A stretch of DNA of 64,000 bases from Macrostomum lignano (GCA_002269645.1 NIVC01001960.1:124001-188000); one strand, 5' to 3'; positions 34,370 through 61,804 are shown, counted from the first letter of the stretch. Translations and numbers: made by a program. The notes: generated by a model not told the origin, from the letters alone.

Positions 34370-36312
34370 TCACCGGTCAGTGGACTGCGGGCTGAAGGTG
34401 TTCAGCAGGGCCGGATCGGCAGGCCGGTTGCAGGAGGGGCAGGCGCAGGAGCGCATCAGCCAGTCGTCGATGCAGGCGCGGTGATAGCCGTGGCCGCAGG
34501 GCAGGCACCGCAGCGGGTCACCTTCGGCGTATTCAACCATGCAGATCACGCACCTGGAAGGTGGACGGATGCGGGCCAGAAGCTGGTTTCCTTCTTGCAT
34601 AACAGAAGTTAGGGGTCACTATAGTACTAGGTAGAAAAAAGCTGAACTCTCCTAGGCATACAGTTTGACCATCAAATGCACAAGTGAAGCCAACAATGAA
34701 TAAAACAGCTGAATCTTGCGGCTGAAGCCGGCGCAGTCACCCAGCCCCTGCTATTGTCAATGCCCAGAATGCAGATCTGCTCTTAGATATAACTGGCTAA
34801 AATTAGAATTAGACGCATCTTATCCAGTGCAGAATATTCTTTAATAGCGTAGAATTAAACAGCCAGTTGAAATCTAGGCACGCACGTCAGCGAGACTGCA
34901 GCGCAGGGCTGCTGGACAACGCCCTATGATTTGAAAGTATTGTTTGCACTATCATAGCAGCCGGTGAAGGGTACACAGCGCACAGGTTAGTCTACAATAC
35001 AACTCGTGTTAAGGCCATATCTAGTAAAAACTGGATTAGGCATGCGATTTTACTCAGGTCAATCTGGAAATACAAAGACACGCACTCAGGATTGTTGTCT
35101 TTGTCGTCCTCTTCGCAGCTGTAGTGCCGAATTGGCAGGTGGCCAATCAGCCCCATCCTTTTCGCAATGCGCACCTGCTCCTCTTCAGACAGCTGGTCAA
35201 CCCGGCGCCCTACACCTGGGGCCAGGTAATAAAGTGGCGCTGGGTCCTGCAGAGTAGAGATAAGGTGGATGATTAGATTCATTGTGATAGTAGTCAAAAT
35301 CTTACCCAACAAACATGTTTACTAGAGTGCAAAATATATCAAGCCTATAAATTTGACCTAGATATGATACTTTTCTCATAAAAACTTGCAAAACTTTTTA
35401 TAAGTCTAAGTTATTAGCTTAAATTATAAAAGCTTTGCCATGTTTGTAAATAAAGCAAAATGATAACTTATTAACACAATTTAGTAAACCTTTTATATTA
35501 GTATAGTCACTATGAAAATAAAGCTATACATAAATGAGTTCTTTATTTAGTTCTGTCTATGACATTTTAGAACTGGATTTATTCAAATAAACCATAGACT
35601 ATTTATAATATCAAATTTAGCTAAATCTTAATAAAGAAAAAATAAACTTACAATATTAACATAATAAAAAATGTAAAAAATATATATACCATAAGATTAT
35701 GTCTGCTTGATTAAAAATAGAAATTAGAAAATATAAAATATTTCTATTTCATTTAGATCCAATTAAGATATATTTTAATAAGAGACATTGAAACAATTGC
35801 AAAAATATAAAGTAGTACAAAATAATTGTTATGATTATCAGATGCCTTTTAAAAATAAGTAGACTAACTTTTTTATTGCATATCAAAGCTTAATACCAAG
35901 TTGGCATAATTGCTAATTCAAAGCCAAGGTCAAAAGTATTAAGAATATATAATTTATTATTATTTAAATGCACAAAAAAGTTATAAAAAATTACATAAAA
36001 ATCTATCTAGATTCAGTAAATAAAATCTATCTGTCTTCAAATATCACAGACGATATTTACAGACCTACTAGAAAATGAACAACGATGAATGAAAAAATAA
36101 AAAAGAAACTAGTTTAAATGCAAAAAGCTCACTTGAACTCCATCCGAATTATGAGATGAGCGCCTTGTACCCCTTTGTAATTGATCCACAATCGGATTGA
36201 TAACAATGCCAGATTCGGAAGACGCTTGATTTCTACTATCAGGAAAAAAGTCGGAACCGCTATTGGGCCTAACTTGATCAGTTGAAAGACAATTCCGAAG
36301 GCAATTTCCCAT
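34370..36312 (-). CDS. RNF11: RING finger protein 11 orthologue; exons 36312-36133, 35246-35086, 34553-34370; 174 aa
   Basis: N-terminal MGNCL (myristoylation/palmitoylation motif as in RNF11), QLSEEEQVRIAKRMGLIGHLP, RING-H2 ECVICMVEYAEGDPLRCLPCGHGYHRACIDDWLMRSCACPSC; GT-AG junctions in phases 0 and 2. Confidence 0.93.
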
Positions 36313-39160
36313 TTGATTTATATTAAAATATAGTACATAATCTTGAAAATTTTCAAACTTCAAATTTATAGTAAGATAGTAGGCTTTTAAAGCTGGTATG
36401 CACTATGCAGTAGTTAATTTACTGGATAACCAGCAAAGGCCAAAAGGTACCTTGCCAGGTAAAGTTGGTAAAGTTGATAAATCACAGCAAAGATACCAAT
36501 AACTTTTAAAAATGTTTAAAAAATCAGCTGATTTTTAACTGAAGAATATTTGTAGTTTATGAAGAATTGAATGTTAGGCATTAAGCAATAACAGATACAA
36601 TTTTTAACCGTGGTAAAAAGGTTACGTATATTTTTCTGCTACTTTGTTTTAACATGCAATGACGAGCCGAGTAGAAATCTTTCAGTCGTTTAAAAGTAAT
36701 AATTACAAGAAATCAATTCTCGACATTGAATTAGTGTGCAAGTGACTTGTGACTAGAATGTTATAGGCTTTAAATTTAGGCGGAGAGACAAATCTTAGAC
36801 ATTTAGTATATGTAAACCAGTGGAATTGAGGCTAACTAGACTTAAGCTGCTATTAATTCAGAGTTTCATTTCTCAATTAATTAATCTTCTGTAGTAATTA
36901 GTAGTAGTAAGTAGCAACTAGCAACTTTGGTGATTATTTAAGTAACAAGTAGCTTAGCTTCATTAGTTTATTTAAATTATTTATTTAAATGGCGAAATGA
37001 ATTTCTATTTAATGAGATTTTTAGCCTAACCATTACTGAGTTTTACAATTTAATTTGCTAAGTTCTATTCTAATACTTAATATTATCATTATTATGGTGT
37101 GATTCTTTATTTCTTAGTAAGCTTTTTTAGACTCCTCAAATTCAAATGCTAAGATTGCTAAGAATCACTTAAATAACGATAAAGTAATTTAATGAACAAT
37201 TCTGCAGGATAGCCTATTTTTCATTTATGTAAAACATTTTATGTACATTGTATGTTAACTAGGCCTATCTTTTTTATTTTATGATTTTATACTTAAGAGT
37301 CTTAAGTATCTTGCCTAGAGTCTTGCCTTTAAGTATAGGGTGTAATGGCCAATTGCATCATTTTTAATTTAATAAATATGATATAAAGTAGAGCATAATA
37401 TAGTATAGGCATAAACTGAGAGGTCTAATATTATTGATTACATTGTGGTAGCTTAGTCTTAGGCCTATTGTTTAAACATTTTAATAGTCAAATTCTAAGC
37501 TTATCAGATGCACATCTAGGGCAATGCCCTAGAATTTATAATTTAAGTAATAAATTCTACTTAAATTAATAAATTAAAATAAAATAAAGACTAATAAATT
37601 CCAGGGCATTGCCATAGTTAGGAAGATGGCCTTTTTCATAAAATTATGGCACAAAAAGATGTTGAACAAGTAACTATGCTAGCACATTCTGGTGCAACAG
37701 CAGATGGGAAGAGGGAAATCTGGTATAGTATGGTACAAGACAAAAAAAGCTGGTACAATTTGGCAAGAAATTTTTTAGCAGAACAATAATTTTATAGATA
37801 GAAAATTAGCACTTTCTTGTTTAATAGTATATCTATATTGATAGATTTTTTCAAATAAAGTATATTAACATTGAATTTGCTATGAAATAGATTCAAATAC
37901 ATGTTTTATAAGTATTTTTTAAATAGAAAAATTGATTTTTGTGTTCTTGTATTTTTTCATAAAAATGTTCTGGCATATGATATAGCAAAGCAAACTTATT
38001 TGATAGGAATAGTTGTAGTGCATAGTGCAATCAAACTTTTTTATAGGATTTGTTCTGGCATATGTATGCCATAAACCTGACTATGGGGGAATTTAATGGA
38101 CTATTTTATTTTTAATATATATAAAATCATTTATTATCTTTGCATTATAACCCTACACTTTATGCAATCACATGGAAAAGTTTATATAATAAATAGAAAA
38201 TGTTCATTTTAGGCATAAATTCTTGAAGCTTTGCTTTGTACATTTGAATTTATATCAACTAGTATAGAATGATTAACAGGCATCAGGCAAAATATTATAA
38301 AAGATATTTTTGATTTTTAGCTGGTATGTACTAAAAACTTTTTTGATATACATTAGCATACATTTGGCCATCATTCAATTCTTGTTTAGACATGCAATTA
38401 GCATTATCTACACTATGGTATAGGATCAACAGTCCTATTTTTTAATGTGCTTTTTATTTAGTATAATGAGTTATTATTTGAGTACCCCTGGCCATAGATT
38501 TTTAGATAGATTTACAATATATTCTAACTTGGATAGAAGCAAGCATCAATAGAGCTAAGGAATTGATATTGGCTAAATAGTTTTTGCATTAATAAATATT
38601 GTATTAGTAGAGGTTTTGTTATTATAGTTTATCATCTTGATATATATTATTAATTTATTATTGAGCATATATAATAATATAGCTAATGGGGTTAGACATT
38701 ATAAGAATATAGAGAAATGCTATTGAAAGTAATTATTGATGATAGAAAAGGTGAAGTCAAAGTTGTACATTTGGCATAAAGGTTACTAACTACACTAATT
38801 AAATAAAAACTAACATACACCTGCAACCTCAAGTTTTACCTAGCTAGTAGGAAATTTTTCTACAAAAAAGATATTTTTATCTAGAAAGCCTTTATGTGAC
38901 AGTTTTTAGTACTTTGTTGATTTGTTTTGCCATAATTTAAGTATCAAAACTTAAAAAAAGGAAATTTAATCCTGAATGAAAGGTATTTAATGTAAGATTT
39001 GATATAAATTAAGATAACAATATGAAAAGGGTTAAACAAAGAGTTTTATTATCTTTTTCATAAATGTTTGCATTTATTTAATTATTGGTTACTTTTTTAG
39101 GATATAGGATATACGAGTAATTTTAATTAAATTTCCAATTTTCTTGTCATGCTGCCAGAC
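35280..39160. promoter_or_regulatory. AT-rich island free of tandem repeats, spanning RNF11 exon 1 and the RNF11/CLEC16A divergent intergenic region; putative bidirectional promoter/outrons
   Basis: Abrupt compositional change visible by eye and head-to-head gene arrangement. Function is inference. Confidence 0.4.
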
Positions 39161-39174
39161 CAGCCCTCGCTCTC

Positions 39175-42100
39175 ATGTTCTCACGCTCGGGCAAAGGCGG
39201 CGGATTCTTCTCCTCTGGCCAGCTGTGGAAGTCGAAGAATCCACACTCGCTTGAGTATCTCAAGTATTTGTATGGCGTGCTCTGCAAAAACCAAAATGTC
39301 ACTGAGCAGAATCGGAGCCTAGTAGTTGAGGCCCTGCGATCGATGTCCGAAATTTTAATCTGGGGAGATCAGAATGACGATACAGTGTTTGACTTCTTTC
39401 TTGAGAAGAGTCTGCTGTCATTCTTTCTTAATTATATGAAGCAGAAGTCTGGCCAGTTCATCTGCGTCCAGCTGCTTCAGACCCTCAGCATTCTGTTTGA
39501 GAACATCAGCAAGGAGTCTTCAGTGTATTATCTGCTGTCTAATAACCATGTTAACTCAATTATCTGTCAGAAGTTCGACTTCAACGATGAAGAGGTATGC
39601 GAAATGGTCTATTTTGTCAGCAATGCCAATAGCTTATATAAGTTTTAAGGGAAGAGCTTCTGGACTGGACAAACTGATGTACTTTTGAATGGGAATGATT
39701 CTGGGCGCACATATATACTTTTGAATGAAAATTATTCTGGACACACTGATGTACTTTTGAATGAAAATGATTCTGGACACACTGATGTACTTTTGAATGA
39801 AAATGATTCTGGACACACTGATGTACTTTTGAATGGGAATGATTCTGGACACACTGATGTACTTTTGAATGGGAATGATTCTGGGCACACTGATGTACTT
39901 TTAAATGGGAATGATTCTGGGCACACTGATGTACTTTTCAATGGGAATGATTCTGGGCACACTGATGTACTTTTCAATGGGAATGATTCTGGGCACACTG
40001 ATGTACTTTTCAATGGGAATGATTCTGGGCACACTGATGTACTTTTCAATGGGAATGATTCTGGGCACACTGATGTACTTTTCAATGGGAATGATTCTGG
40101 ACACACTGATGTACTTTTGAATAGGAGTGATTGGGTACATTGATGTACTTTTAAATAGGAGTGATTAGGCACATTGATGTGCTACAAATGTCAGGAGAGT
40201 CAGGATGCTATAGCATCTTTATTGCACAAAAAACCTGTTATAGGGGTTCTTGGCTCTCTAAAATCTTTTTTTAATCTTAGGCCTACTTTTAAATAGGAGT
40301 GATTATGAGAACACGGATGTACTTTTAAGTTGGAGTAATTGATGGGGCATAAAAACTATTGAGTCAAGTGATTAAAAAATATAGTTGAAGTGTCAAGTTT
40401 TACCCACCCTCTCTTTGCCCAGGTGATGGCCTACTACATATCGTTTCTGAAGACTCTATCGCTGAAGCTGAACAAGCACACAATTCACTTCTTCTACAAT
40501 GAGCACACTAACGACTTCGCTCTGTACACCGAGGCCATAAAATTCTTCAACCACCCGGAGAGCATGGTGCGCATAGCCGTTCGCACCATCACCCTCAATG
40601 TCTATAGGGTTGACGATAAGGCCATGATGCGTTATATTCGCGAGAAATCAGCCGGGCCCTACTTTTCCAATTTGGTCTGGGTGATGGGCAGCCACGCGCT
40701 AGAGATGGACGCTTGCATCCGGTCGGATCACACCGCCAGGGCTCGCCTAGCCGACCTGGTCTCCGAGCACCTGGACCAGCTGCATTACATTGGCGACGTT
40801 CTCCGTCTGGGCATCGAAGCGTTGAACGCCACCCTGACCGACTATCTGGTTGACGGTCTCCTGCTGCCGCTGACTGTGCGCTCCCTGCTTGGCGGCGACC
40901 CCAGCTCGGCATCCACCAGCGTTGGCGTCAACCGCTCCCTAGCCGCCTACCTGCTGGCTCACCTCTACCTGGCTGTACACCATCCGCCACTTTGTCGGCG
41001 CCTGCTTGACGCCGCTCTGACCGGACTGGCCGCCTGTCGCAACCGGGAATTCGTCCGGCCGGCCGAGAGTCTGGCCGAAGCGCTTGACAAACGGGCCGGC
41101 CGACCTCGGCCAGGCATTCGAGTCGGGCAGGATGGCAGCGTCCAGCGGCAGGGCTCCCTGCCGGACGAGGAGGCGGCAGCGACTGCCGACCTGGCCTCGT
41201 CTTCAGAGGACGGCAGCGGAGGCGACACGTTCGAAGACGCTCTTGACGATGTGCCTCAGCAGCTGGCGCAGACGCCCCAATCGGGCAGCCTGCTCGAGGC
41301 TCTGCTGTCCGCCTTGGAAGCCGCCGCCAATTCGGCAGATTCGGTCGATGCCGACTCGTTTGCGCTGCACTCGCTCGGCCTGCTGCACTCGCTGGCCCGG
41401 AGTCCCGGCTTGCACGGCCAGTCTATTGAACGGGTTGTGTCCGGCAGTGCCGGCCGCCTGGCCGAGGCCCTGCTAAAACTGCTTGCCAGCGCCTGCCAAG
41501 GAAATTCTCGGATTCGCTTGGCAACAGCTGAATTGGCAGCCGAGCTCATTGACCGATTGGCCACGTCTGAGAATGCCGAGATTGCCGGCTCGATGCGCCA
41601 GCAGGTGGGCTGATTGTACTTTATTATTTAGCCTAGCCTACTAGCCTACTTCTAGGATTTAGAAAATTTCAGGATTTTTAACCATAGCATAGGATAGATC
41701 AAACATAGGATGCACTGGCACCCATGTGAATCAGGCATACGATGCACTGGCACCCATATGAATCAGGCATATGATGCATTGGCACCCATATGAATCAGGC
41801 ATAGGATGCACTGGCACTCATATGAATCAGGCATATGATGCACTGGCACTCATATGAATCAGGCATATGATGCACTGGCACTCATATGAATCAGGCATAG
41901 GATGCACTGGCACTCATATGAATCAGGCATAGGATGCACTGGCACCCATATGAATCAGGCATAGGATGCACTGGCACTCATATAAATCAGGCATAGGATG
42001 CACTGGCACTCATATGAATCAGGCATAGGATGCACTGTCACCCATATGAATCAGGCATAGGATGCACTGGCACTCATATGAATCAGGCATAGGATGCACT

Positions 42101-44968
42101 GGCACTCGTATAAATCAGGCCATTTCAGCACTGGCACTCATATGAATCAAGGCATAGAATGCACTGGCACTCATATGAATCAGGCATAGGATGCACTGGC
42201 ACTCGTATAAATCAGGCCATTTCAGCACTGGCACTCATATGAATCAGGCATAGGATGCACTGGCACTCGTATAAATCAGGCCATTTCAGCACTGGCACTC
42301 ATATGAATCAGGCATATGATGCACTGGCACTCATATGAATCAGGCATATGATGCACTGGCACTCATATGAATCAGGCATAGGATGCACTGGCACTCATAT
42401 GAATCAGGCATAGGATGCACTGGCACTCATATGAATCAGGCATAGGGCGAGCATGAGCATTGGTTATTTATTATGTATGTTTTTCAATACATAGATTCAA
42501 CCTATAGATTTCACATACTACCGTACTTTCAGTAGGCAGTTGCGCGCATTGTCAAACAAATAAACAGTATACATATTTAAATATATCTGCAGGCTCTGCT
42601 AGACTCCGTCAGCCAGGCCAGCACGCTGGGCGTTCAGCTGCGCTTCCGCTCGGGTGACGATCTGTTTCTTGACCTATTCGAAGACGAGCTGGCCAGACTG
42701 AAGCCCGTCAACCTGGAGCTGCTGCTGATGGACTCCAGCCTGCTGCTGGCGCCGGCCGCCACGCCAATGTCCGGCATCGACGATTTCGCCCGTCGGCTGC
42801 CCTGCGGCGAGGTCGAACGATCGCGCCGCTCTGTGCGCCTGTTCCTAACGGTGCGTCGGCTCTACCAGCGACTGGCCAGCCCTCCTGGAGTGTCCGATGC
42901 CGACCTGCCGCTTGGCGGTCCGGCCGAGCCCGTCCGCGTGGCCGACTCGCTAGACTTGAACAATAGCGATCTGATTGGCTGCCGAGTAGAGCGGGAGGCC
43001 GGCCGGCCAGTGGAGCGGCGCTTCCTAGTTGTAGACGCGGTGCGGCACCAGGCCATGCTGGTTGAGCCAGACTCTCGCCGGCTCGGCTGGGGTGTGGTGA
43101 AATTTGTTGGCTACCTGCAGCACGTTGAGGCGGCCTCGGATAGGGAGGATTCGCGCTGTCTGCACGTCACTTTTCACAATCCGGGCACTGCGCCTTACGG
43201 GGGCCCTCGGCCGCCCCTGCTTGCCGCTAAGTACGTTTGCGTTTGTATCTATAGATCTGATTTTTAGTATATGGATGTGTATGTACATACAGATCTGATG
43301 TTTATGACTATATATCTGATGTTTGTCTATAGATTTGATGTTTCAGTATAATATAGATCTGATGTGTATGTCTCATCCATAGACGTTTATAGATTTGATG
43401 TTTATGTCAATAGATTTTATGTTTACGTTCATTAAATCCGATGTTTCTGTACGAAGATCTGATGTTCATGTCTATAGATCTGATGTTCATGTCTATAGAT
43501 CTGATGCTCATGTCTATAGATCTGATGTTCATGTCTATAGATCTGATGTTCATGTCTATAGATCTGATGTTCATGTCTATAGATCTGATGTTCATGTCTA
43601 TAGATCTGATGTTCATGTCTATAGATCTGATGTTCATGTCTATAGATCTGATGTTCATGTCTATAGATCTGATGTAGTGACTATAGATCTGATGTGTATG
43701 TCCATAGATCTGATGTTTATGCCTATAGATATGAGATGTGAGGTATGAGATATGAGACCTCTGTATTCGAATGTGATGAGATCTCTTAAAGGGAAAAGAT
43801 CAGAGACTATTGGCCTAGGCTCATAAAGCAGCTCATTATTTCCCCTCATCTTTATTTCAGATTTATATTCGACGACCACATCCGGTGCATGGCTGCACGC
43901 CAGCGCCTGGTCAAAGGTCGGCAACGTGTCAGACGCGAGAAATCCGTCCGTCTGGCCGCTCTGCTCGGCCTGGCGCCCGCCAACTCGGCGTCGGCCGCCT
44001 CGACGCATGCCGCTGCCGCATCAGCGTCCACGGCGGCTGCAGCAGCTACGCGACCAAGACGGGAGAAGCGGCTGTCTGCTTCAAGGAACTCGGCTGCCGC
44101 ATCGCCGCCCGCTAGCCTGGTTGGCCGGCCGTCTCGTGCATCCGGCTCCGCCGCCGCTACAGCTGCCGCCACCGCAACCTTCACCGAGACCTGCCTGCTG
44201 AGCCCCGCCGAAGCTGATCGAATCGACCTGTTTGTTGAGCAGGCCGCCTCTGAGGCCGCCGCGGCAACTGTCTCCAAATGCACTGTTGACCCTAAAGGCG
44301 ACACCGCTTGCAATGGCGTTTCTTTAGCCAGCAAGGCTAATGCCACTGCTGCTGCTCCTAGCAGCTCACCTGCCGCCAGCAATGCTGATGCTGCCGCTTC
44401 TGCTCCTAGCAGCAATGATGATGCTGCCGCTGCTGCTTCTAGCAGCAATGCTGATGCTTCCGCTTCTGCTCCTAGCAGCAATGATGATGCTGCCGCTGCT
44501 GCTTCTAGCAGCAATGCTGATGCTGCCGCTTCTGCTCCTAGCAGCAATGATGATGCTGCCGCTGCTGCTTCTAGCAGCAATGCTGATGCTGCCGCTTCTG
44601 CTCCTAGCAGCAATGATGATGCTGCCGCTTCTGCTCCTAGCAGCAATGATGATGCTGCCGCTTCTGCTCCTAGCAGCAATGATGATACTGCCGCTGCTGC
44701 TCCTAGCAGCAATGATGATGCTGCCGCTGCTGCTCCTAGCAGCAATGATGATGCTGCCGCTGCTGCTCCTAGCAGCAATGCTGATGCTGCCGCTTCTGCT
44801 CCTAGCAGCAATGATGATGCTGCCGCTGCTGCTTCTAGCAGCAATGATGATGCTGCCGCTGCTGCTCCTAGCAGCAATGCTGATGCCGCCGCTGCTGCTC
44901 CTAGCAGCAATGCTGATGCCGCCACTGCTGCTCCTAGCAGCTCACCTGCCGCCAGCTCGGAGAACTAG
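39175..44968 (+). CDS. CLEC16A: CLEC16A/Ema/GOP-1 orthologue (FPL domain); exons 39175-39594, 40423-41604, 42593-43230, 43861-44968
   Basis: KNPHSLEYLKYLY, EILIWGDQND, FDFFLEK, YYLLSNNHVNSII, EEVMAYYISFLKTLSLKLN, FFNHPESMVRIAVRTITLNVY, PCGEVER, GWGVVKF, KFIFDDHIRCMAARQRL; all junctions GT-AG and in frame. Confidence 0.95.
39670..40130. repeat. 36-bp minisatellite in CLEC16A intron 1, ~13 copies
   Basis: ACTGATGTACTTTT recurs every 36 bp. Confidence 0.93.
41705..42445. repeat. 32-bp minisatellite (ATGAATCAGGCATAGGATGCACTGGCACTCAT) in CLEC16A intron 2, ~23 copies
   Basis: Directly visible. Confidence 0.94.
43245..43730. repeat. 21-bp minisatellite (TCTATAGATCTGATGTTCATG) filling most of CLEC16A intron 3
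   Basis: Homogeneous core ~43450-43670 with degenerate flanks. Confidence 0.92.
44341..44950 (+). repeat. Coding 33-bp (11-aa, AAASAPSSNDD-type) tandem repeat in the CLEC16A last exon, ~18 copies
   Basis: In frame within ORF 43889-44968. Confidence 0.92.
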
Positions 44969-45631
44969 GCACCTCGAATAAACAACGCGTTTTGTTTAAA
45001 ATATGTTTTAGTAGATTTTTGCATTTATCATCAATAAAACTGCAGTGTATTTTGCATTCTCTGGCTTATACGAGCGCTCCTATGCTCGTATTTTATATCA
45101 GTGATAAGATTTGTTAGAAAGTGTGCGATTTACTCGTATGTTGCGATAGCATGCCCTGTTACCTGATTTATAACTCACTGTGCATATAGGGTACTCCCAT
45201 TGATGTATTTCTCTGGTTCTGGTGAATCTAATCTCTGATAATCTTACGAATCTACCGTATCCTATCGTTTCCGTACTTTTCTCTTCATCAAAAATGCTAA
45301 TTGGCATAATAAAATTTTACTTTAAAATTTATTCGATTCTGTTTATAAAAACTATGGTTTACTTTGGTGTAATCTGATTAGAATTCGTTTGTCTTCTAAT
45401 ATTGAACTTTAACTAGTCAGCCACTTTTTCTGCAAAGATGCAATTTTGTGTGCTTAAGTGGCTTTTGAGTTATTGTTGGCTCTTGTGTATCCATTTTTTG
45501 TTCTTTGTTGCTGTCCACTTCTATAAAGTTTTTTTACATGCCGTTTTTTTATGCGGTCAACTTGTTTTAGCGTGTCTTTTGCTTTGCTGCTCAGTCAAAA
45601 AATCCACCAGGGGTTCTTTCTGCGGTGCAAG

Positions 45632-45805
45632 CAGACAGACAGACAGACAGACACTAGGACAGACAGACAGACAGACAGACAGACACTAGGACAGACAGAC
45701 AGACAGACAGACAGACACTAGGACAGACAGACAGACAGACAGACACTAGGACAGACAGACAGACACTAGGACAGACAGACAGACACAAGGACAGACAGAC
45801 ACTAG

Positions 45806-45849
<44 letters not shown>

Positions 45850-45973
45850 CAAGGACAGACAGACAGACACTAGGACAGACAGACAGACACTAGGACAGAC
45901 AGAAAGACAGACAGACAGACAGACAGACACTAGGACAGACATACAGACACTAGGACAGACATACAGACACTAG

Positions 45974-46068
<95 letters not shown>

Positions 46069-46642
46069 GCTAGGACAGACAGACAGACGCTAGGACAGAC
46101 AGACAGACACTAGAACAGACAGACACTAGAACAGACAGACACTAGGGCAAACAGACACTAGGACAGACAGACAGACACTAGGACAGACGGACAGACAGAC
46201 AGACAGCCAGACAGACAGACAGACAGACAGACTGACACTAGGACAGACAGACAGACACTAGGACAGACAGACAGACACTAGGACAGACAGACAGACACTA
46301 GAACAGACAGACACTAGGACAGACAGACAGGCACTAGGACAGACAGACAGACACTAGAACAGACAGACACTAGGACAGACAGACAGACACTAGGACAGAC
46401 GGACAGACACTAGGACAGACAGACAGACACTAGGACAGACGGACAGACAGACAGACAGCCAGACAGACAGACAGACAGACTGACACTAGGACAGACAGAC
46501 AGACACTAGGACAGACAGACAGACACTAGGACAGACAGACAGACACTAGAACAGACAGACACTAGGACAGACAGACAGGCACTAGGACAGACAGACAGAC
46601 ACTAGAACAGACAGACACTAGGACAGACAGACAGACACTAGG

Positions 46643-46682
<40 letters not shown>
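45632..46682. repeat. (GACA)n microsatellite with recurrent CACTAG interruptions
   Basis: Directly visible. Confidence 0.95.
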
Positions 46683-46683
<1 letters not shown>

Positions 46684-48908: not shown

Positions 48909-49175
48909 TATATTATCACTGAAGCAATAAAAAACGAAGACCACTATCTGAGCACATGATGAGCAGGCCACCAGGCTAGTTAGTTAAGTAAACATTTCAC
49001 ACTAATAAGAGATGCTTCTTGGCCTAGGTAGCGTTTTCATCGGGCAGCCCCCTTGCTGCCTACAGGTCAACTGTAGCCTTGATCTACCTGCGGCAGCGCC
49101 TGCAGCCCCCCCCCCAATGCAAACTAACGGCACACGGCTATTGTTACATTTCTGCCAGGGTAGGCGGCATCTGCC

Positions 49176-52100: not shown

Positions 52101-54479
52101 GCTACCCAGTGTTCTTTCAGGCTACCCTGTGTTCTCTCAGGCTACCCAATGTTCTCTCAGGCTACCCAGTGTTCTCTCAGGCTACCCAGTGTTCTCTCAG
52201 GCATTCCAGTGTTCTCTCAGGTTCTCCAGTGTTCTTTCAGACTACCCAATATTCTCTCAGGCTACCCAGTGTTCTCTCAGGCTACCCAGTGTTCTCTCAG
52301 GCTACCCAGTGTTCTCTCAGGCATTCCAGTGTTCTCTCAGGTTCTCCAGTGTTCTTTCAGACTACCCAATGTTCTCCCAGGCTATCCAGTGTTCTCTCAG
52401 GCTACCCAATGTTCTCTCAGGCTCCCCAGTGTTCTTTCAGGCTACCCAATGTTCTCTCAGGCATTCCAGTGTTCTCTCAGGTTCTCCAGTGTTCTCTCAG
52501 GCTACCCAATGTTCTCTCAGGCTACCCAGTGTTCTCTCAGGCTACCCAATGTTCTCTCAGGCATTCCAGTGTTCTCTCAGGTTCTCCAGTGTTCTTTCAG
52601 ACTACCCAATATTCTCTCAGGCTACCCAATATTCTCTCAGGCTACCCAATGTTCTCTCAGGCTCTTCAGTGTTCTCTCAGTCTACCCAGTGTTCTCTCAG
52701 GCTACCCAATGTTCTCTCAGGCTATCCAGTGTTCTCTCAGGCTACCCAATGTTCTCTCAGGCATTCCAGTGTTCTCTCAGGTTCTCCAGTGTTCTTTCAG
52801 ACTACCCAATATTCTCTCAGGCTACCCAATGTTCTCTCAGGCTATCCAGTGTTCTCTCAGGCTACCCAATGTTCTCTCAGGCTCCCCAGTGTTCTTTCAG
52901 GCTACCCAATGTTCTCTCAGGCTACCCAATGTTCTCTCAGGCTCTCCAGTGTTCTCTCAGGCTACCCAATGTTCTCTCAGGCTCCCCAGTGTTCTTTCAG
53001 GCTACCCAATGTTCTCTCAGGCTATCCAGTGTTCTCTCAGTCTACCCAATGTTCTCTCAGGCTATCCAGTGTTCTCTCAGGCTACCCAATGTTCTCTCAG
53101 GCTACCCAATATTCTCTCAGGCTACCCAATATTCTCTCAGGCTACCCAATGTTCTCTCAGGCTCCCCAGTGTTCTTTCAGGCTACCCAATGTTCTCTCAG
53201 GCCCTTCAATGCACGAGTGCTTAATTAGAGTATCCCGAGCACACTAATAACTGGATGGGCCACTCGGGCACACTGGCTTGCTAAAACTGTCTCTACTTTC
53301 AGCTCAGTAGCAAGGCAGAATGCATAAGCTATTCTATGAAAAGACAGGCAGTTGGAGTGACTAGCAGACGCCAACACAACTGGCTATTGGTGCAGCCGTA
53401 ATGTACATTTACCAGCCAGAGCCACTGAGAATGTACATGCCAGCTTTAGGCTGCCACTCTGATATGGGCAATAAAATTCAGCGGGGGGGGGCGGTGCTAA
53501 GAGGGCCAATAAATGAGTCTCGTCTTAAAATACGTTAAAATGCTTCTATTTGAACTGCCTACTGAACTGAAAGTAGCTTATGCGCAGATGTGCACTCAAG
53601 TCCTTTTACGAGTAGATGAAAAAATCTTGTTCAAAAAGAAGACAAAAACTTTGCTTCTTGCTCAGGCTCGAATGCAAAACCGCTCTAAGCGAGGCCGAGC
53701 GCATCAAGCGCCTCCTGTTAGACCAGTTCGCCGCCGAGCACGCCAAAGCCAAGGCCGAAGCCGAAGCTGCCGAGGCCGCCAGGGCGAATGCCGTTGCTGC
53801 CAAACAGGCCGAGGAGATCCTGCCGCCTGTTGAACCGAGCGCGCCGCCGCCGCCGTACAGCGGTGCCGATGCGTCCTCGTCGACCATAGCACCGCCCAGC
53901 CTGTCGGAGGACTTCGGCCTCTCTGACAGCAGCTGGGGCAGCCATTCGGGCGTTGGTTCGCTGCGCACTCTGGTGCTGCCGGCCCAGCTCGGGCTGAGAT
54001 TTCTCCGCCTGGCCGACAGCAACACCGCCGCTAATAAGGAGACCTGCGGCATTCTCTGCGGCTCAGTGAGAGACGGCGCCCTGGCCGTCACAGATTTGGT
54101 GCTGCCGAAGCAGAGCGGAACTTCGGACTCCTGCACCACCAGCGGCGAGGAGGAGATCTTCGGCGTGCTGGACAGGTTCGACCTGGTCACCCTCGGCTGG
54201 GTGCACACGCACCCTACTCAGACTGCTTTCCTATCTAGCATCGACCTGCACACTCACCTGTCCTATCAGCTCATGCTGCCCGAAGCTGTTGCCGTTGTGT
54301 GCGCGCCGAAATTCGGCGACACGGCTACGTTCACCCTGACCCAGCACGGCCTGGACTATCTCAGCCGCTGCTCTGGCAAGGGCTTCCACCCGCATCAGGA
54401 GCATCCGCCCCTGTTTGAGCGGGCCAAGCACGCCATTGATGCGCCCGAGGGCGATCTTAAGGTGCACGATTTGCGCTGA
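49176..54479 (+). CDS. STAMBP: AMSH/STAMBP family JAMM deubiquitinase; exons 49176-49444 and 53666-54479
   Basis: N-terminal domain KYLRSGVEMMRMA...AYVLFSKFAIMVLDKLPKHPGF; phase-2 junction KNAR|LECK; MPN/JAMM motifs ETCGILCG, PKQSGTSDSC and GWVHTHPTQTAFLSSIDLHTH...YQLMLPEAVAVVCAPK. Confidence 0.95.
49571..53200. repeat. 20-bp minisatellite (GTTCTCTCAGGCTACCCA(G/A)T), ~181 copies in unbroken register, in the STAMBP intron
   Basis: Register is constant on every 60-nt line; local 200-bp and 120-bp higher-order periods. Confidence 0.98.
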
Positions 54480-54679
54480 ATACATCTGGGCCTGCTCCGT
54501 TTGGATTGTGTTGCCTTCGGAATAGTTTGTTTCAACACATATCGGTGTTGTTGAAGCCTAACTCTGAATGGCTTAACCTGCTGAGTTCGATCAATTCTAA
54601 CGGATACTGATTTGCTAGCTATCCAGATGTACTCAAGCATTTTGGGCTAGAGACTCTTGTAGAGCCTTAATCTTAATCT

Positions 54680-55310
54680 CACCCAGTCACTCTCCCAGTC
54701 TCTCTCGGTCTCACCCAGTCACTCTCCCAATCTCTATCAGTCTCACCCAGTCACTCTCCCAGTCTCTCTGTCTCACCCAGTCACTCTCCCAATGTCTCTC
54801 AGACTCCCCCAGTCACTCTCTCTAATCTCTCTCAGTCTCACCCAGTCACTCTCCCAATCTCTCTCAGTCTCACCCAGTCACTCTCCCAATCTCTCTCAGA
54901 CTCCCCCAGTCACTCTCTCTAATCTCTCTCAGTCTCACCCAGTCACTCTCCCAATCTCTCTCAGTCTCACCCCTGTCACTCTCCCAATCTCTCTCAGACT
55001 CCCCAGTCACACTCTCTAATCTCTCTCAGTCTCACCCAGTCACTCTCCCAATCTCTATCAGTCTCACCCAGTCACTCTCCCAGTCTCTCTGTCTCACCCA
55101 GTCACTCTCCCAATGTCTCTCAGACTCCCCCAGTCACTCTCTCTAATCTCTCTCAGTCTTACCCAGTCACTCTCCCAATATTTCAGTCTCACCCAGTCAC
55201 TCTCCCAATCTCTCCCAGTCTCACCCAGTCACTCTCCCAATCTCTCTCAGTCTCACCCAGTCACTCTCCCAATCTCTCTCAGTCTCACCCAGCCACTCCC
55301 AATCTCTCAC
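54680..55310. repeat. Degenerate pyrimidine-rich ~30-bp array (TCTCACCCAGTCACTCTCCCAATCTCTCTCAG)
   Basis: Directly visible; a related array occurs at 61870-62105. Confidence 0.88.
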
Positions 55311-56134
55311 AGTGATTGATCACACCGATAGACTACTATTCTATTACTAATAGTAATATTGGGCGTAAATTTTTATTAATTACGCATTAAATCTAGCTTA
55401 AAATGAAAAAAGAAGTGTGATTTTGATTTCTATCTCTGCAAGCGGCAGTGTGTATCCAGTCTATTGTTCTGTCTTTTCTCTATGCAATATGATGCCGTCA
55501 GTGTTGCAGTAGCTCTGTGTTCAATGTACGATATTTTTATATCCCTATATTGATAGAAAAACTCCTATTCTGCGCCGAGCTGTTTCACAGTACATACTGC
55601 TCTGTTATTTGCCAAAACGGATGCTTCTCGTATACAGTGAGCGAAATGAGAAAGAGCTGACTGCTTCCTTTATAACCCCCAATTTTCATATTTGTTTACA
55701 TAATGCGATGCTTGCACAGTATTTTTGTTATGATATACTAAGCGTTTCGGCTTGACACTGCTTATAATTAATGCTATATTTTTATTATTCCTTGGCTGAA
55801 TTAAATTCGATAATACGACAACAAACGCTTATTGGAAATTTATTTGTGTAGCACAAATTTCTGCTTTTATTTATTTATTTATAGAGAATTCGATTTAGGG
55901 GAAACTTTCATTTTGGCATTATGAATTTGGATCCTTGTATGTCAAATGTCAAATCTGGTTCATATTTCATTTTTAGTGCTAATAGTTTTATATTTATTGG
56001 GGTTCTTGGTGTTTCTGGACCTCTATCGGTTGTCAGCTTTGAGCAATCTGTGAGCATGGAGTCTGCAAACTTCTGCAACCCTCTGTGGGTCAGAGAGGCT
56101 CTGTACTATGCTATAGAGTCAGGGGGCTGCAGGC

Positions 56135-56778
56135 ACACAACCGGCGAGAGGCATTACTGCCCATTCCGCCAACTCCCCTGAGCAGGCACACAAGCGGCGA
56201 GAGGCATTACTGCCCATTCCGCCAACTCCCCTGAGCAGGCACACAACCGGCGAGAGGCATTACTGCCCATTCCGCCAACTCCCCTGAGCAGGCACACAAC
56301 CGGCGAGAGGCATTACTGCCCATTCCGCCAACTCCCCTGAGCAGGCACACAACCGGCGAGAGGCATTACTGCCCATTCCGCCAACTCCCCTGAGCAGGCA
56401 CACAAGCGCGTGGATCATGGATGAAGCAATAGAAAGGCTCGCTCATCTGAAACCGGCGTACAAGCTTCAGCCAGTAAGAACTTGGGGGGGGGGGAGGGTA
56501 CTATTATTAAATTCCAGCAGCCAATGAAATTCATGGGGGGAATATCCCAATTTTTAGGAAGTCTTGGCCGTAGACTCGCTTTCAGATGAGCGATCCTTTC
56601 TATTCCTTCATCCATGGCGCGGATACGTACGCAGTCATACGCACAGGCACACGCTCACAGTTAGGCATGCACACTTCACTGAGCCTTGTGGGGTTGGCCC
56701 TCAAGGCCGTTAATTGCACGAGCAGAGATTCCAATTTGGCTCCAAATTAATGTGACTGCACTTGGAATCGAGCCTGGA
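56135..56778 (+). mobile_element. Dispersed repeat family A, copy 3, with five tandem 53-bp units and a nested MITE
   Basis: GGCACACAACCGGCGAGAGGCATTACTGCCCATTCCGCCAACTCCCCTGAGCA x5, then family-A sequence interrupted at 56416-56616. Confidence 0.8.
56416..56616. mobile_element. 201-bp hAT-like MITE
   Basis: 37-bp TIRs with 2 mismatches (CATGGATGAAG(C/G)AATAGAAAGG(C/A)TCGCTCATCTGAAA); 8-bp TSD GCGTGGAT/GCGCGGAT; the empty site is seen in family-A copies 1 and 2. Confidence 0.88.
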
Positions 56779-56998
56779 GAACGCAGTGCTGGATGCTCAG
56801 CAATGTAAAGGGTAGGGATTGAACTTTTTGGTTAATGCCAGCTGGCATCCTGGTTTTCAATTTGGCATCTTGAATTTGCGTGGGAGTGTCACTTCCATGT
56901 CTCCCGCTCCGTGTTCCCTGATCTGAATATCTATGGAGCTTAGACCTGTTGTTTTACCTCAGTAATTAATATTAATAATTTGTCCGGCCATCCCGCAG

Positions 56999-59900
56999 CC
57001 TCAGCAAGACGCTCAACAGACCCCGGCGCTGGCTGACGAGTTGGCCAGTCTGCACCAGCAGCTGCGCCAGGAGCGCCTCTTTGTCTGCTGCGAGAAGGAT
57101 CTCATCAGGCAGCTGTTTGATCAGCTGAGCGACGCCTCTCGTAGAATACTGCACGAAGGCTTCCGTTTGCACCTGCAGCAGCGACTGCTCACCCGCGAAG
57201 CTGCCACAGCCTCGGCCGCTACAGGCTGCGTGGATTTGGCTCGCTTCGCCGCCGCTTTGGACGCCGAGCTGCGCTATCGCGATGCCTACTCTCTGCTCAC
57301 CTGTCACGAGCACAAGTACGCCGACCTGCTCAGGCTGCTGCGAACCAGCCCGGACCTGCTGGCTCACGTGCTGCTCACTGTTGAGCGGCGGCCTCTCGCT
57401 GACACCGACTGCACCAACGACCCGCCCGGCAGCGGCGGCTGCCTGCCCAGACTGCTGCAGTGCGTCTTCGCCTGCCTGTTCGGCCACTGCCTGGCCGAAT
57501 CGTCCGAGGAGGCCTGCTATCAGACTCTGATGCGCCTGATGGAGATTCAGGTTGGTGCTCAGTTAGCGAGAACTCACTGGCCCTTCCTGTTAAGTCAGTG
57601 ATTTATTGATGGATATTTATTACTCTGTTGTAGCCTAGTGGTTAGAGCAACGGACTCACGACTTGAAGGTCGGGGGTTCGATTCCCGATCCCACTGGAAC
57701 AGTTTGTGTCCTCGATCAAGACACTTAACTCTACACTGCTTCAGTTCACCCAGCTGTAAAATGGGTGCCAGCATTAGCTGGGGTAATTGAGGCTGTGTGT
57801 AGCGACCCCCCCCCCCCAGTCCTTGGACTGAACAGCCGTACGCAGCCTTCAGATGCGCCGCGCAAATAGCAGCTGAGCTGTCGGTTGCACACCTGGCCCA
57901 ATTAGGGCAGGTGTGAATCAATTATTATTATTATTATTATATTAAAATCCTGGGATTTATGGTTATTTATCTAATAGTCAAATGTAAGGGACATAAAGTG
58001 ACTCAAAAATCTGCCAACCCCTGTCTCATACTCAGGTCCTGCCGCTGGACAATCCCGTCAAGCTGTTGTCTCGCGGCACGGCCACTTTTGTCCGACTGCT
58101 CCGCCTCAGCCTGGACGCCGGCGCTGGCGGCTTCCTGGTGCAGACCCTACGCCGGCCGATTCACACCCTGCTGGCGGAGTTCAACGATGTCTTCTTGGAT
58201 CTGGATCTCAACAAGGCTGTGCAGGTAACTGCCGGTATATGCCTTGTCGCTTGCCTGTGGCTTCTACTGGCTATTATTGCCAGTTGTCTCTACCCTGTCA
58301 TTCTACTGTCTACCCTGTCATTCTACTGTCTACCCTGTCTACCCTACTGTCTACCCTACCGTCTACCCCTACCATTCAACCCTGTTGCAGGACCGGTTCT
58401 GCCGGGACCGACGCGAGCACATGTTTGGGAAGGAGGGCAGCGAGCAGTTTGAGCTGTGCGTGCGCGACTACCGCAAGCAGATGGCCGATAGGTAAAATTT
58501 GCGACTTAACCTAAGCTGCAAACTGACTGCGGCCGGCAAACCCGCACGAGCTCTGGTTTCCATATTTCAGAGTGGCCCGCCTGGCCCGCCTGTTCATAGA
58601 CGAGCTCCGCGAGAACACGCGCGCCTTTCCACGACCGTTCCTCTGGTTGCTGAGCGGCCTCTACCGGCAGGCCAGCGGCCGGCCCAACAGTCGAATGTCG
58701 CCTGCGGCAGCGCGCTCCCTCTGCGGCCACCTGGTGTTTCAGCACTACCTGATCCCGGCCCTGCTCGACCCCGAGCACAGCGGCATAGTTTGCAGCGTGG
58801 CTATCAACTACATCCAGCGGAACAACCTCATGCAGATGGGCCAGGTACTCGAGGCATTGTGCCAGGGCGGCTCGCTGGACTCGCGCGTATTCAGCCCGGA
58901 GATATTCGGCCAGTTCGAGCCGGACTGTCTGACTGGCTGGCTGGACTCGCTGCTGCGGATCGGCGCCGGGCTCAGCGGGCCAGTTGCCGGCCTGCAGCCG
59001 CAGCAGCAGCACCAGCAGCTCCAGCTGAGCAGCCTGGCTGTCACGCCGGACGATCTGGACCTGCTTGTCCGGGCCTGCCGCGTTGCCGTCGGCTCCGGCC
59101 AGCAGGACGACGGAGCGGGGGCGGCTGCCGCAGCCAGTGCGGCCGCATCGCAGCAGCGACGCAGACTGGAGGCCTGTCTGGCCGACCTGCCCGAGTCCGT
59201 GCCGGGTCGCTCCGCTGCCAACGCCACCGGCTCTTTCTCGACGGGAGCAGCCGCATCGCCAGCTCACAATGTCGGCTCGGCCTCTTCAACGCCGAGGGCC
59301 GAGGCGGCGCTGTCGCACTCGCCAGCGTCCAGCTCGTCGCCTTTTGTGCATCGCCGCCGGCAGGTGACGTCATTGCTCGGCAACTTTGGCAGCGGAGGCG
59401 GCGGCATCGGAGCCCACTCGCCTCTGACTGGCTCTACGGAGTCGCTGTGCGCTCCGGACTCCGGGCAGGAGATGGTAGGGCTTGATGTACTTCCATAGCT
59501 CATGTATAGTGCTATGCTTCAAACTAAGAAAAAATAAGTACAAACGGATTCTGTGTTCTCTTTATAGACGGGACATTGTGAACTTTATCGTGGTCTTATT
59601 GATAAAGCTTAGGTACCTAAGGTTCCGTTAGGTTTGTCTAAACTTTGAAGAATAGGATATTCTACTATTAGTAAACATTTAACATTTCCTCATTCCTCAT
59701 TAACAGATCCGGCAGTCCCGCGACGTCCTGGTGCTCCAGCTGGACCCGCCGGCCGACTGTCCCGGCCTGCTGCCCGAGGACCGGGTGCTGGAGAAGGCCA
59801 GCAAGCGAGCCAGGGTGTCAATCTTCGCGCCGGAGGAGTCTTCCTACACTAGGGGCGGCGGCGGCGGTGGCAGCGGCGGCAGCGGCGGCAACGAGAAGAA

Positions 59901-61804
59901 GACCCGGTTTTCACTTAGCGGACTCGGCGGCGGCGACTCCGAAGCCGGCGGCTCAACATCTGGCAGTCATCAAGGCGGAGGCGCCGGTGGCGGCGGCGGC
60001 GGTGGGGGTGGCGGCAGCGGCGGAGACTGTCTGGAGATTGTCAGCGAGACCGCCATCTCGGAGGTGGCCTCCACGCACAGCGCGCCGTCAGTGGAGATGG
60101 ACGAGGAGGACGAGAGTCTGGTCTCCGCCAACGTCAGCGGCCGCGGTACGCCCAGCATCAGCGGCCGAGACAGTCCGCTAGACGCCCTGCCAGACGGCAG
60201 CAGCGGCAAAGACGTCACCGAGCGATTCAACAAGTTCGACATTCCGCCCCCGCAGCGGGACATGTCGCCAGTTGAACGCCCCGACGATCAATGGTCTACG
60301 TCGGTGATTGACAGCGAAGGCGACAGGGACGCCACGGCGCGCGACCTGATGCTGGACACCGACGACAAGTTCTCGATTGAAGTGCCAGCTAGCGAGGCCG
60401 ACGACAAATATTCGGAGCGGCTTGGCGAGGATTTCGACGAGACGGCCAGCAACTGCAGCAGCAGCGTGTCGGCCGCCAAGGTTGGCGCAGCCGCGGCGGC
60501 CGCAGCCAACGCAGCCGCGGCAGCCGCCAATCGGCGCCGATCGCAAGACGACCACGCCGGCCCAGTCGAAGCCGCAGCTGCCGGCATCGGGGCCAGCGAC
60601 ACCGGCAGCGAGCCGGGCGGAGGCACCGGCGGCGCGATCGGCAGCGGCGGTGGCCGACCATCCCGGCCGGCCGGTCCGGCTGGCAAGCTGAAGAAGCCGC
60701 TAGCCAAGAAGACGCTGCTGAACGCGGCCGCCAAGTCTGGCGGCATCGTCGGAGGCGGTGGTGGCTCCAGCGGCGCCGTTGAATCAGAATCGGCGGCGTC
60801 CCCAGCGGTGACTGCCTCGCCGGCTGCAGCGACTCCACTGTCGGCCGCTGACCTGGTGTTCACAAAATACAAAACTGCCCGAAGGCCGCCGGCCGGGCCA
60901 GCCACGGCCTCTGCCGCCGCGGCCAACAACTCAACCGGGTCGCCGGCGCCCGCTGCCGCCGCTGACGCCGAAGACGCCGCCGACGGTGCGACCGGCGCCG
61001 AGTCCTCCCAGGCGGAGGACGGGACAGCCGCGCCGCCGTTTTTCGATCCTAGCAATCCGGAGGACAGCCCGGCCTTCGCCGAGGCCAAGCGGCGGCTGCG
61101 CTCCGCCCTCACCAGCTCGGAGTTCCGCCTGCTGCCGCCCGGCGGCTTCGACTCCGGCTCGGCTAGCGGCGGTGTCGCCGACCTGTTGAGGCGCCAACTG
61201 GCCGAGGCGGCCGAACTGGGCCTGGACCAGCTGGCTGCCGCCCTGGCCGACCTGTTGGCCGTGCTGGCCCGTTCGACGCGCACGCCTTGAAGCGGCTGCT
61301 GCTGTCGATGCGGCGCGACCTGAAGCAGCGGGCCGTGTACGCCGCCTACCTGGTGAACACGCGCACGCCCTGGCCGCCAGGCGGGACCGAGCCGAGCACG
61401 CGCTTCGCCGCCTGCGACACTCCCGCCGCCTGGCCTTTCAACAGTTGCTGCTGTGCGAGCTGCGCGCCTTCTTAAAGCGCTCGGACGAGCACGAGGTGCG
61501 CAGCCTGCAGGCCACGCTGCGTCAGTGCAATTCTGCTGACGAGAAATGCGAAGAGACCCAGAAACTCGTGGCTCACCTGTGCGCCAGGCTCAACTGGAGC
61601 CGGTCTGCCGGCCTAGGATTCGATCAGCAGGACTCGTCAGTGGCGGCCGCGGCCAACTCCGAGGAGGACTCGCCAGCTGGCGACCTGCTGCAGCAGTCCT
61701 ACGATTATATTGAGCGCTGGCTAGTGAGCTACCCGGAGGTCTATGCCTACCTGAGCGGCTCTAACGACATGCGCGTCATGCAGGAGCGGGACGAGGTGTT
61801 CCGG
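56999..61804 (+). CDS. GAPVD1: GAPVD1/Gapex-5/RME-6 orthologue, 3'-partial; exons ~56999-57550, 58036-58224, 58391-58491, 58571-59474, 59707-61804; no in-frame ATG at the 5' end; two apparent -1 frameshifts near 61270 and 61363; VPS9 exons expected beyond the window
   Basis: LHQQLRQERLFVCCEKDLI (N-terminus), DNPVKLLSRGTATF, MFGKEGSEQF, FPRPFLWL, IPALLDPEHSGIV...INYIQRNNLMQMGQVL (RasGAP-like), EVASTHS, SANVSGRGTPSISGRDSP, FAEAKRRLRSAL, KQRAVYAAYLV; GT-AG junctions in consistent phase. Confidence 0.9.
57626..57940 (+). mobile_element. tRNA-derived SINE in GAPVD1 intron 1
   Basis: A-box TAGCCTAGTGG (57631-57641), B-box GGTTCGATTCC (57675-57685), central CACCCAGCTGTAAAATGGG segment reminiscent of conserved SINE core domains, and an (ATT)n tail. 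Confidence 0.85.

Follow-up and report, generated by a model that had tools for sequence, protein, structure and literature searches.

Four consecutive endosomal genes in Macrostomum lignano and a GAPVD1 start codon probably supplied by the spliced leader

Results

The four-gene locus and its copies

We analysed a stretch of 64,000 nucleotides from the flatworm Macrostomum lignano (assembly GCA_002269645.1, record NIVC01001960.1, bases 124001-188000; hereafter the window), in which the genes RNF11, CLEC16A, STAMBP and GAPVD1 lie next to one another. A reading of this DNA made from the sequence alone (the sequence-only reading) had proposed that the four form a functional cluster, with one bidirectional promoter and a three-gene operon resolved by spliced leader (SL) trans-splicing. 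We describe here the genes, their 5' ends and the gaps between them, and weigh that proposal against simpler arrangements. All coordinates are window positions, to which 124000 is added to obtain the position in NIVC01001960.1, and the locus record used for comparison (L005) is identical base for base. Our gene, operon and splice readings rest on the genome sequence and on public gene models. Scans for open reading frames (ORFs) and Pfam domains showed a window with G+C-rich exons, A+T-rich spacers and abundant minisatellites. The genes and the intervals between them are as follows.

34370-36312, minus strand: RNF11 coding region, 174 aa; exons 36312-36133, 35246-35086 and 34553-34370
36313-39156, no strand: divergent RNF11-CLEC16A intergenic region, 2844 bp, 27% G+C
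39175-44968, plus strand: CLEC16A, model of 1115 aa; exons 39175-39594, 40423-41604, 42593-43230 and 43861-44968
44969-49175, no strand: CLEC16A-STAMBP gap, 4207 bp; tandem arrays 45634-46683, 47172-47661 and 48187-48803
49176-54479, plus strand: STAMBP/AMSH; exons 49176 (or 49194)-49444 and 53666-54479, splice junction read
54480-56998, no strand: STAMBP-GAPVD1 gap, 2519 bp; tandem array 54677-55313, dispersed repeat 56129-56777
56999-61804, plus strand: GAPVD1 exons in the window, 56999-57550, 58036-58224, 58391-58491, 58571-59474 and 59707-61804, splice sites read

The order RNF11(-), CLEC16A(+), STAMBP(+), GAPVD1(+) is uninterrupted by any annotated gene, and the NCBI accessions run in series, with PAA62228 for RNF11, PAA62229 presumably for CLEC16A, PAA62230 for STAMBP and PAA62231 for GAPVD1. 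The same block is found on two further scaffolds, NIVC01001751.1 (PAA64431-PAA64434) and NIVC01002658.1 (PAA56151-PAA56154), again with consecutive accessions; the two additional copies are called B and C below. No ORF longer than 86 aa occurs in the intergenic gaps, and no other called gene is listed at the loci in the three copies. Thus the identities, order and strands of the four genes, supported by Pfam domains, by the RNF11 model and by public annotation, and the lack of any further gene between them, agree with the sequence-only reading, which had also rightly assumed a flatworm.

Unique non-coding sequence is 98-100% identical among the three M. lignano copies, which are the product of recent duplication as judged from their sequences; the species is a hidden polyploid (PMC10468722). 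We considered the three copies as a test of conservation and rejected it, since an identity of 98-100% leaves no power. Because the copies are near-identical recent duplicates, their agreement carries no weight. Searches of the window with Rfam, a tRNA scan and the leader sequence gave no match, and in the literature searched, supplements included, we found no mention of the gene identifiers of this locus.

The RNF11 model obtained here is identical to PAA62228.1, PAA64434.1 and PAA56154.1. Its RING-H2 domain was recognized by Pfam (zf-RING_2, 7e-13), and an alignment with human RNF11 gave 53% identity across 109 aa, the similarity reaching beyond the RING domain. In mammals, the PPxY motif of RNF11 binds NEDD4-family ligases. 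The M. lignano protein has no canonical PPxY, and the stretch aligned to the human sequence reads PAPLYY. Inspection of the exon spans 36133-36312 and 35086-35246 showed that the N-terminal acylation motif (MGxC) is present as MGNC. A Gly2/Cys4 acylation motif, a PPxY and a C-terminal RING-H2 are the hallmarks of RNF11 (PMC7697665).

The CLEC16A model, whose splice sites were read and whose translation has no internal stop, matched the Pfam families FPL and CLEC16A_C with E-values of 1.9e-28, 2.3e-23, 8.8e-24 and 5e-45. Its homologues are 59-73% identical, with proteins named CLEC16A reaching 73%. The annotated product of the window copy has 973 aa (39157-44586), and the annotated products in the three copies have 973, 1210 and 865 aa; in copy C, a 1-bp deletion leads to a premature stop. 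Two of the three public CLEC16A products are truncated. A coding tandem array of a 33-bp (11-aa) unit, at 44377-44941, makes up the C-terminal tail of the protein.

STAMBP matched USP8_dimer (1.5e-12) and JAB (1e-17) in Pfam, and its ORF carries the JAMM motif HTHPTQTAFLSSID. Its closest matches are named STAM-binding protein, and the homologues are at most 59% identical. Roughly 180 copies of a 20-bp unit form a 3.6-kb array (49571-53202) that takes up most of its single intron, and the coding span including the intron differs between the three copies, at 5289, 6785 and 2764 bp.

For GAPVD1, Pfam recognized the RasGAP domain within the window and the VPS9 domain on copies B and C. A tblastn search with the intact 1424-aa copy placed the final, VPS9-encoding exon at the window-equivalent of 70047-70475 (L005 23049-23477), 6 kb past the window end and beyond an 8.2-kb intron, with the frame order 2,1,2,3,1,3,2. 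The gene is real, as had been proposed, and 61804, taken as its end, is the end of the penultimate exon with the VPS9 exon lying outside the window. In comparison with the two intact copies, the reading frame of the window copy is shifted twice by 1 bp, near 61270 and near 61364, which explains why the annotated product stops at 61290 after 1109 aa, while the intact copies encode 1424-1425 aa. These frame shifts, and likewise the deletion in CLEC16A of copy C, may be assembly errors or signs of decay in redundant copies. The last intron of GAPVD1 (61805-64000; L005 14808-23048) contains long CT repeats and measures 8.2 kb here as against 0.77 kb in copy B. It also holds a remnant of a mobile element.

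61857-63110, plus strand: Penelope-like retroelement remnant with a GIY-YIG ORF (Pfam 1.1e-4, just above cut-off), in the last GAPVD1 intron

The 5' end of GAPVD1

An acceptor site had been proposed just upstream of the coding start of each of the three plus-strand genes, and a poly(A) signal just after CLEC16A. All the motifs listed in that proposal were found at their places.

39152-39158, plus strand: CTGCCAG acceptor-like motif, 16 nt 5' of the CLEC16A ATG at 39175
44977-44982, plus strand: AATAAA, 8 nt past the CLEC16A stop TAG at 44966-44968
49152-49158, plus strand: CTGCCAG acceptor motif proposed for STAMBP, 17 nt before the ATG at 49176, with ACTAAC at 49123-49128
56992-56998, plus strand: CCCGCAG, GAPVD1 acceptor and likely SL trans-splice site, with CAG at 56996-56998

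The site upstream of GAPVD1 is almost certainly a trans-splice site. No ATG occurs at or after the acceptor in the first exon until an in-frame methionine about 170 codons in, and an in-frame TAA lies upstream at 56963. Immediately past the acceptor CAG the reading frame is open. GAPVD1 orthologues begin with a methionine just 8-9 residues inside the exon start. The public protein PAA62231.1 (BOX15_Mlig011836g2) begins with PQQDAQQ at 56999, with no methionine, and residues 1-184 of our query, the first GAPVD1 exon, match residues 1-184 of this protein at 100% identity. In all three copies the GAPVD1 model is 5'-partial, beginning with PQQDAQQ in copy C also and one codon later, with QQDAQQ, in copy B.

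The spliced leader of M. lignano, CGGTCTCTTACTGCGAAGACTCAATTTATTGCATG, ends in ATG (PMC8629364), a triplet that is held to act as a start codon in Macrostomum (PMC10468722). The annotation pipeline trims transcripts at mapped, leader-trimmed SL reads (PMC5730564). In Schistosoma, leader AUGs have been documented as initiators (Cheng 2006, as cited in PMC9851317). When the leader is joined to the GAPVD1 exon at 56998/56999 (a slash marks a junction here and below), its ATG falls in frame, giving MPQQDAQQTPALADE... and a protein that begins MPQQDAQQ.... GAPVD1 mRNA would thus be made by SL trans-splicing at the CAG ending at 56998, with the junction ...TTGCATG/CCTCAGCAAG, and the exon, having no ATG of its own, would use the terminal AUG of the leader as its in-frame start codon. 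The sequence and the public gene models together make it very probable that GAPVD1 is trans-spliced and initiates on a codon donated by the leader. Such a start codon would explain why all public models of the gene are marked partial.

The 5' ends of CLEC16A and STAMBP

Acceptor motifs alone are near the level of chance, since a YAG and pyrimidine tract can be found no more than 30 nt 5' of 17-26% of all the ATGs that the window contains. Moreover, none of the three acceptor sites matches exactly the motif enriched at M. lignano trans-splice sites, YTNCAG. The annotated CLEC16A coding sequence begins at 39157 (AGACCAG) in all three copies, and so takes in the AG of the CTGCCAG motif, 2 nt before the proposed junction. 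The exon sum of copy C (438+1182+638+340 = 2598 nt, or 865 aa and a stop) fits this annotated start. A leader AUG joined at this acceptor would be out of frame, with an upstream ORF of 32 codons. The annotated 5' end makes trans-splicing of CLEC16A at or beside 39158 moderately probable.

For STAMBP, CTGCCAG and ACTAAC are both present, but neither this acceptor nor the ATG at 49176 corresponds to the annotated 5' end. PAA62230.1 (355 aa, marked partial) has its annotated start at 49191, as do the models of the other two copies; this lies 31-33 nt downstream of the proposed acceptor and past the ATG at 49176, and in copy B the motif itself reads CAGCCAG. The sole AG that fits the annotated 5' end is AAG/CC at 49188/49189, where the pyrimidine tract is poor. 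Two in-frame ATGs lie 18 nt apart (49176-49197), of which the second, at 49194 within GCCGCCATGG, is retained by the public models and is the start of an older gene model. A leader AUG would again be out of frame, with an upstream ORF of 12-22 codons. As judged from the annotated boundary, the 5' end of STAMBP mRNA probably lies at about 49189-49191, with translation from the ATG at 49194; whether that end is made by trans-splicing we regard as an evenly balanced matter.

We considered a single boundary rule for the three genes, either an exact cut after the AG or one 2 nt earlier, and rejected it, for neither fits all three annotated 5' ends. Because no one rule fits, trans-splicing of CLEC16A and STAMBP is treated here as likely, though unproven. 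By way of background, 45% of the human-conserved genes of M. lignano are trans-spliced.

Upstream of STAMBP, CCAATCAG (48875), TATTATAAG (48900) and AATAAA (48926) lie 230-285 nt before the acceptor region, and may represent either a promoter or a distal poly(A) signal. The CCAAT box CCAATCAG together with TATTATAAG was set aside as a STAMBP promoter and kept merely as a lead, CCAATCAG occurring 4 times in the window against 3.07 expected.

The gaps between the plus-strand genes

Operon pairs of M. lignano are defined by a gap of <1 kb after subtraction of repeats, with a mode of about 100 bp, and such gaps are known to be swollen by repeats; the operons hold up to nine genes, and 40% of trans-spliced genes are found in them (PMC8629364). 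The same work requires neighbours on one strand with no interrupting gene on the opposite strand, and this arrangement is seen in all three copies. It also asks for SL trans-splicing of the downstream gene, strongly though indirectly supported for GAPVD1, and for a single precursor transcript across the genes, at which only the chimeric STAMBP-GAPVD1 model described below hints. The two gaps, which had been described as 4.2 and 2.5 kb of mostly repeats and T-rich sequence, proved to be of that kind (4207 and 2519 bp; 51% and 36-51% repeat), several of the unique stretches having 38-42% T. In the CLEC16A-STAMBP gap, tandem arrays make up 2157 bp (51%) and leave about 2.05 kb, which is twice the cut-off and 20 times the mode. 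In the STAMBP-GAPVD1 gap, the array (637 bp) and the dispersed repeat (649 bp) add up to 1286 bp (51%; the tandem array alone 36%), leaving about 1.23 kb of unique sequence, or about 0.9 kb if the 3' untranslated region (UTR) of STAMBP ends after the ATTAAA at 55386, so that this pair is borderline. All repeat-adjusted sizes are upper bounds, the sequence subtracted being the tandem arrays and the dispersed repeat. On the plus strand of the STAMBP-GAPVD1 gap no AATAAA is found, and ATTAAA occurs at 55386, 55800 and 56506.

The dispersed repeat in this gap contains an internal 53-bp array and is present three times in the window (56129-56777, 338-602 and 14442-14705). In the gap copy there is an additional segment of about 200 bp, bounded by inverted repeats of about 40 bp (~56410-56620). 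In addition, a cryptic donor, AAG/GTGCAC, lies 17 nt before the STAMBP stop (54459-54463), and joining it to 56996-56999 is in frame in the window sequence. An AMSH-GAPVD1 fusion made through this donor would lose just the last five residues of AMSH. The UniRef entry A0A1I8IYU6, from the older ML2 assembly, splices AAG/GTGCAC at 54461 to exactly the GAPVD1 acceptor. This entry may be an ab initio artefact; the assembly is rich in indels and both genes are partly out of frame in it.

The divergent RNF11-CLEC16A spacer

A bidirectional promoter is understood as one regulatory region that serves two divergent transcription starts separated by less than about 1 kb, and a single promoter of this type had been placed at 36.5-37 kb. 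The spacer has no ORF of at least 60 aa and no distinguishing sequence feature, and nothing in its sequence points to such a promoter. Here 2844 bp separate the RNF11 ATG from the 5' end of CLEC16A, and over this interval copy C matches the window copy at 99.6% identity. In copy B, however, the interval has been stretched from 2.8 to 7.2 kb (7221 bp; L009 2780-10000) by three insertions of about 2.1, 1.3 and 1.0 kb at the window-equivalents of ~37342, ~38119 and ~38563. In total 4.4 kb is tolerated, and just 593 bp beside CLEC16A and about 1 kb beside RNF11 stay contiguous with their genes. We infer from these insertions that promoters close to RNF11 and to CLEC16A are favoured over a shared one.

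Functional links and linkage in other species

GAPVD1 is a Rab5 exchange factor. AMSH is a binding partner of RNF11, which is located on endosomes (PMC7697665), and GOP-1/CLEC16A and Ema act in the maturation of endosomes and phagosomes (PMC5461019, PMC2835942), so that the biology cited in favour of a module holds. The linkage of the genes, on the other hand, was not found at the loci of other species that were examined. With tblastn, the partner genes were not found within 10 kb at three loci of other species, namely one STAMBP locus, the CLEC16A locus of Rotaria and that of Heterobilharzia, the last being a large locus at which the stretch covered ends short of the neighbouring genes. In one compact genome, STAMBP is flanked by an AAA ATPase gene and an F-box/SPRY gene, and CLEC16A of Rotaria is flanked by RPL22 and a leucine-rich repeat gene. 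Conservation of the linkage was seen only among the near-identical duplicates within M. lignano, and the notion of a selected functional module or of conserved linkage is not borne out. If some 5% of genes are taken to be endosomal, four in a row would be expected roughly 0.1-0.2 times per genome for this one theme, and runs of four on any noticeable theme several times. The shared endosome/ubiquitin theme is most likely a coincidence and not a selected module.

Other features of the window

Two coding features lie upstream of the four genes. An ORF for a piggyBac-type transposase (27028-28727; DDE_Tnp_1_7 and zf-Tnp_2), for which no gene is called in the public annotation, has its nearest named relatives in M. 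lignano (61-84% identity for the ORF at 27300-28727), with 30-37% identity elsewhere. A two-exon gene for a G protein-coupled receptor of the Srw/rhodopsin type occupies 13194-15637 on the minus strand, and a short coding repeat falls within the ORF that contains its first exon.

Discussion

We lean slightly towards the interpretation that the four genes are separate transcription units in an ordinary neighbourhood of four conserved genes. Each of the three plus-strand genes would have its own promoter within the gaps, and at most STAMBP and GAPVD1 would share a transcript. Regions of 1-2 kb upstream are sufficient as promoters in M. lignano (PMC5730564). The AATAAA 8 nt after the CLEC16A stop, whose presence close behind that stop had been correctly noted before, also speaks against one polycistron. 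Several points weigh against separate units. The gap between STAMBP and GAPVD1 is borderline, and falls below 1 kb if the STAMBP 3' UTR reaches 55386 or if part of the gap is unrecognised transposon sequence, repeats being known to swell operon gaps in this species (PMC8629364). If the CLEC16A 3' UTR were long and repetitive, the distance from the AATAAA at 48926 to the STAMBP acceptor would shrink to about 230 nt. The chimeric entry A0A1I8IYU6 joins STAMBP to GAPVD1 at the very acceptor discussed here, and in flatworms chimeric models often mark polycistronic precursors, some of them with gaps of several kb (PMC12582326). The boundaries are also inconsistent, being exact after the AG for GAPVD1, 2 nt early for CLEC16A and at AAG/CC with a poor pyrimidine tract for STAMBP, and the positions of SL addition, polyadenylation and transcription start are each read from coding-region boundaries.

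These points bear most directly on a two-gene operon, in which a single precursor carries STAMBP and GAPVD1, cleavage and polyadenylation yield the STAMBP mRNA, GAPVD1 is released by the SL at 56998, and RNF11 and CLEC16A are separate. In its favour, trans-splicing of GAPVD1 is very probable and no public model gives that gene a separate 5' exon, operons hold 40% of the trans-spliced genes of M. lignano, the adjusted gap of 0.9-1.2 kb lies at the edge of the 1-kb limit and is devoid of a canonical plus-strand AATAAA, and the junction of A0A1I8IYU6 from 54461 to the GAPVD1 acceptor is in frame in the window sequence. Yet the gap is ten times the operon mode, a unique AT-rich stretch of about 800 bp (55314-56128) could hold a promoter given that 1-2 kb upstream suffices (PMC5730564), and A0A1I8IYU6 comes from an error-rich older assembly with the genes partly out of frame and may be an artefact of ab initio prediction. 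We consider such an operon possible but doubtful. The larger arrangement put forward in the sequence-only reading, with RNF11 transcribed leftward from a bidirectional promoter at 36.5-37 kb and a CLEC16A-STAMBP-GAPVD1 polycistron transcribed rightward, with three SL acceptors, as a co-regulated module, is unlikely. Three genes on one strand with none annotated between them in all three copies, a species with operons of up to nine genes and repeat-inflated gaps, annotated 5' ends that are 5'-partial coding sequences at or near AG sites, and real functional links among these proteins in other animals are consistent with it. Against this stand the CLEC16A-STAMBP gap, which without its tandem arrays is still about 2.0 kb and hence above the 1-kb cut-off, the AATAAA directly after the CLEC16A stop, the difference between the proposed STAMBP acceptor and the annotated 5' end, and a promoter interval that is featureless and holds 4.4 kb of insertions in copy B with 593 bp conserved beside CLEC16A. 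Acceptor-like motifs are, in addition, common by chance, the linkage was not found in the other taxa examined, and runs of four genes on some broad theme are, by our rough estimate, expected several times per genome. A variant, in which a repeat-inflated, SL-resolved polycistron encodes a co-regulated endosomal ubiquitin/Rab module and occasional cis-splicing from 54461 yields an in-frame AMSH-GAPVD1 fusion, appears slightly more improbable still. The opposite extreme is that no trans-splicing takes place, the acceptors being cis sites of unannotated 5' UTR exons, one of which would carry the GAPVD1 ATG. In parasitic flatworms the same acceptors often serve both cis- and trans-splicing (PMC12582326), and the three sites lack an exact YTNCAG. 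However, three independent public GAPVD1 models start at the acceptor with no upstream exon, the pipeline behind them uses SL reads to place such boundaries, the ATG of the leader falls in frame, and 45% of conserved M. lignano genes are trans-spliced, so that we hold this alternative to be very improbable.

With separate transcription units as the favoured arrangement and trans-splicing of GAPVD1 as the better supported claim, GAPVD1 (~1425 aa) offers a clear case of a large conserved gene whose start codon seemingly comes from the spliced leader. The public models need correction, the STAMBP start probably being the ATG at 49194, the window copy of GAPVD1 carrying two frame shifts and the CLEC16A products being truncated in two of the three copies. 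If the plus-strand genes did share one transcript, they would form a rare, functionally coherent animal operon with members in one pathway, and would provide a handle on how flatworm operons survive the expansion of repeats.

Comparison with known systems

The gro-1 operon of C. elegans contains gop-1, the CLEC16A orthologue, together with gop-2, gop-3, gro-1 and hap-1. It places a CLEC16A orthologue in an SL-resolved operon in another phylum, but its members are otherwise unrelated genes and not STAMBP or GAPVD1, and it represents a parallel and not a conserved linkage. The SL operons of M. lignano itself (Wudarski et al. 2017, PMC5730564; Ustyantsev and Berezikov 2021, PMC8629364) resemble this locus in the organism, in the gene class of which 45% is trans-spliced, in gene models that start at a CAG, in the shared strand and in gaps swollen by repeats; they differ in that the adjusted gaps here come to about 2.0 and 0.9-1.2 kb, as against about 100 bp, and in that no exact YTNCAG is present. 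As in the chimeric models described from flatworms (PMC12582326), A0A1I8IYU6 fuses STAMBP exon 2 to GAPVD1 through a downstream acceptor, but, unlike them, it stems from an older, indel-bearing assembly with parts out of frame. Start codons donated by the spliced leader are also described from Schistosoma. There, more than 40 cDNAs (Cheng 2006, J Biol Chem, as cited in PMC9851317) have the configuration that the genome and gene models predict here for GAPVD1. With CLEC16A and STAMBP, by contrast, a leader AUG would not be in frame, which corresponds to the majority case in Schistosoma, where 72% are given as not in frame (PMC9851317).

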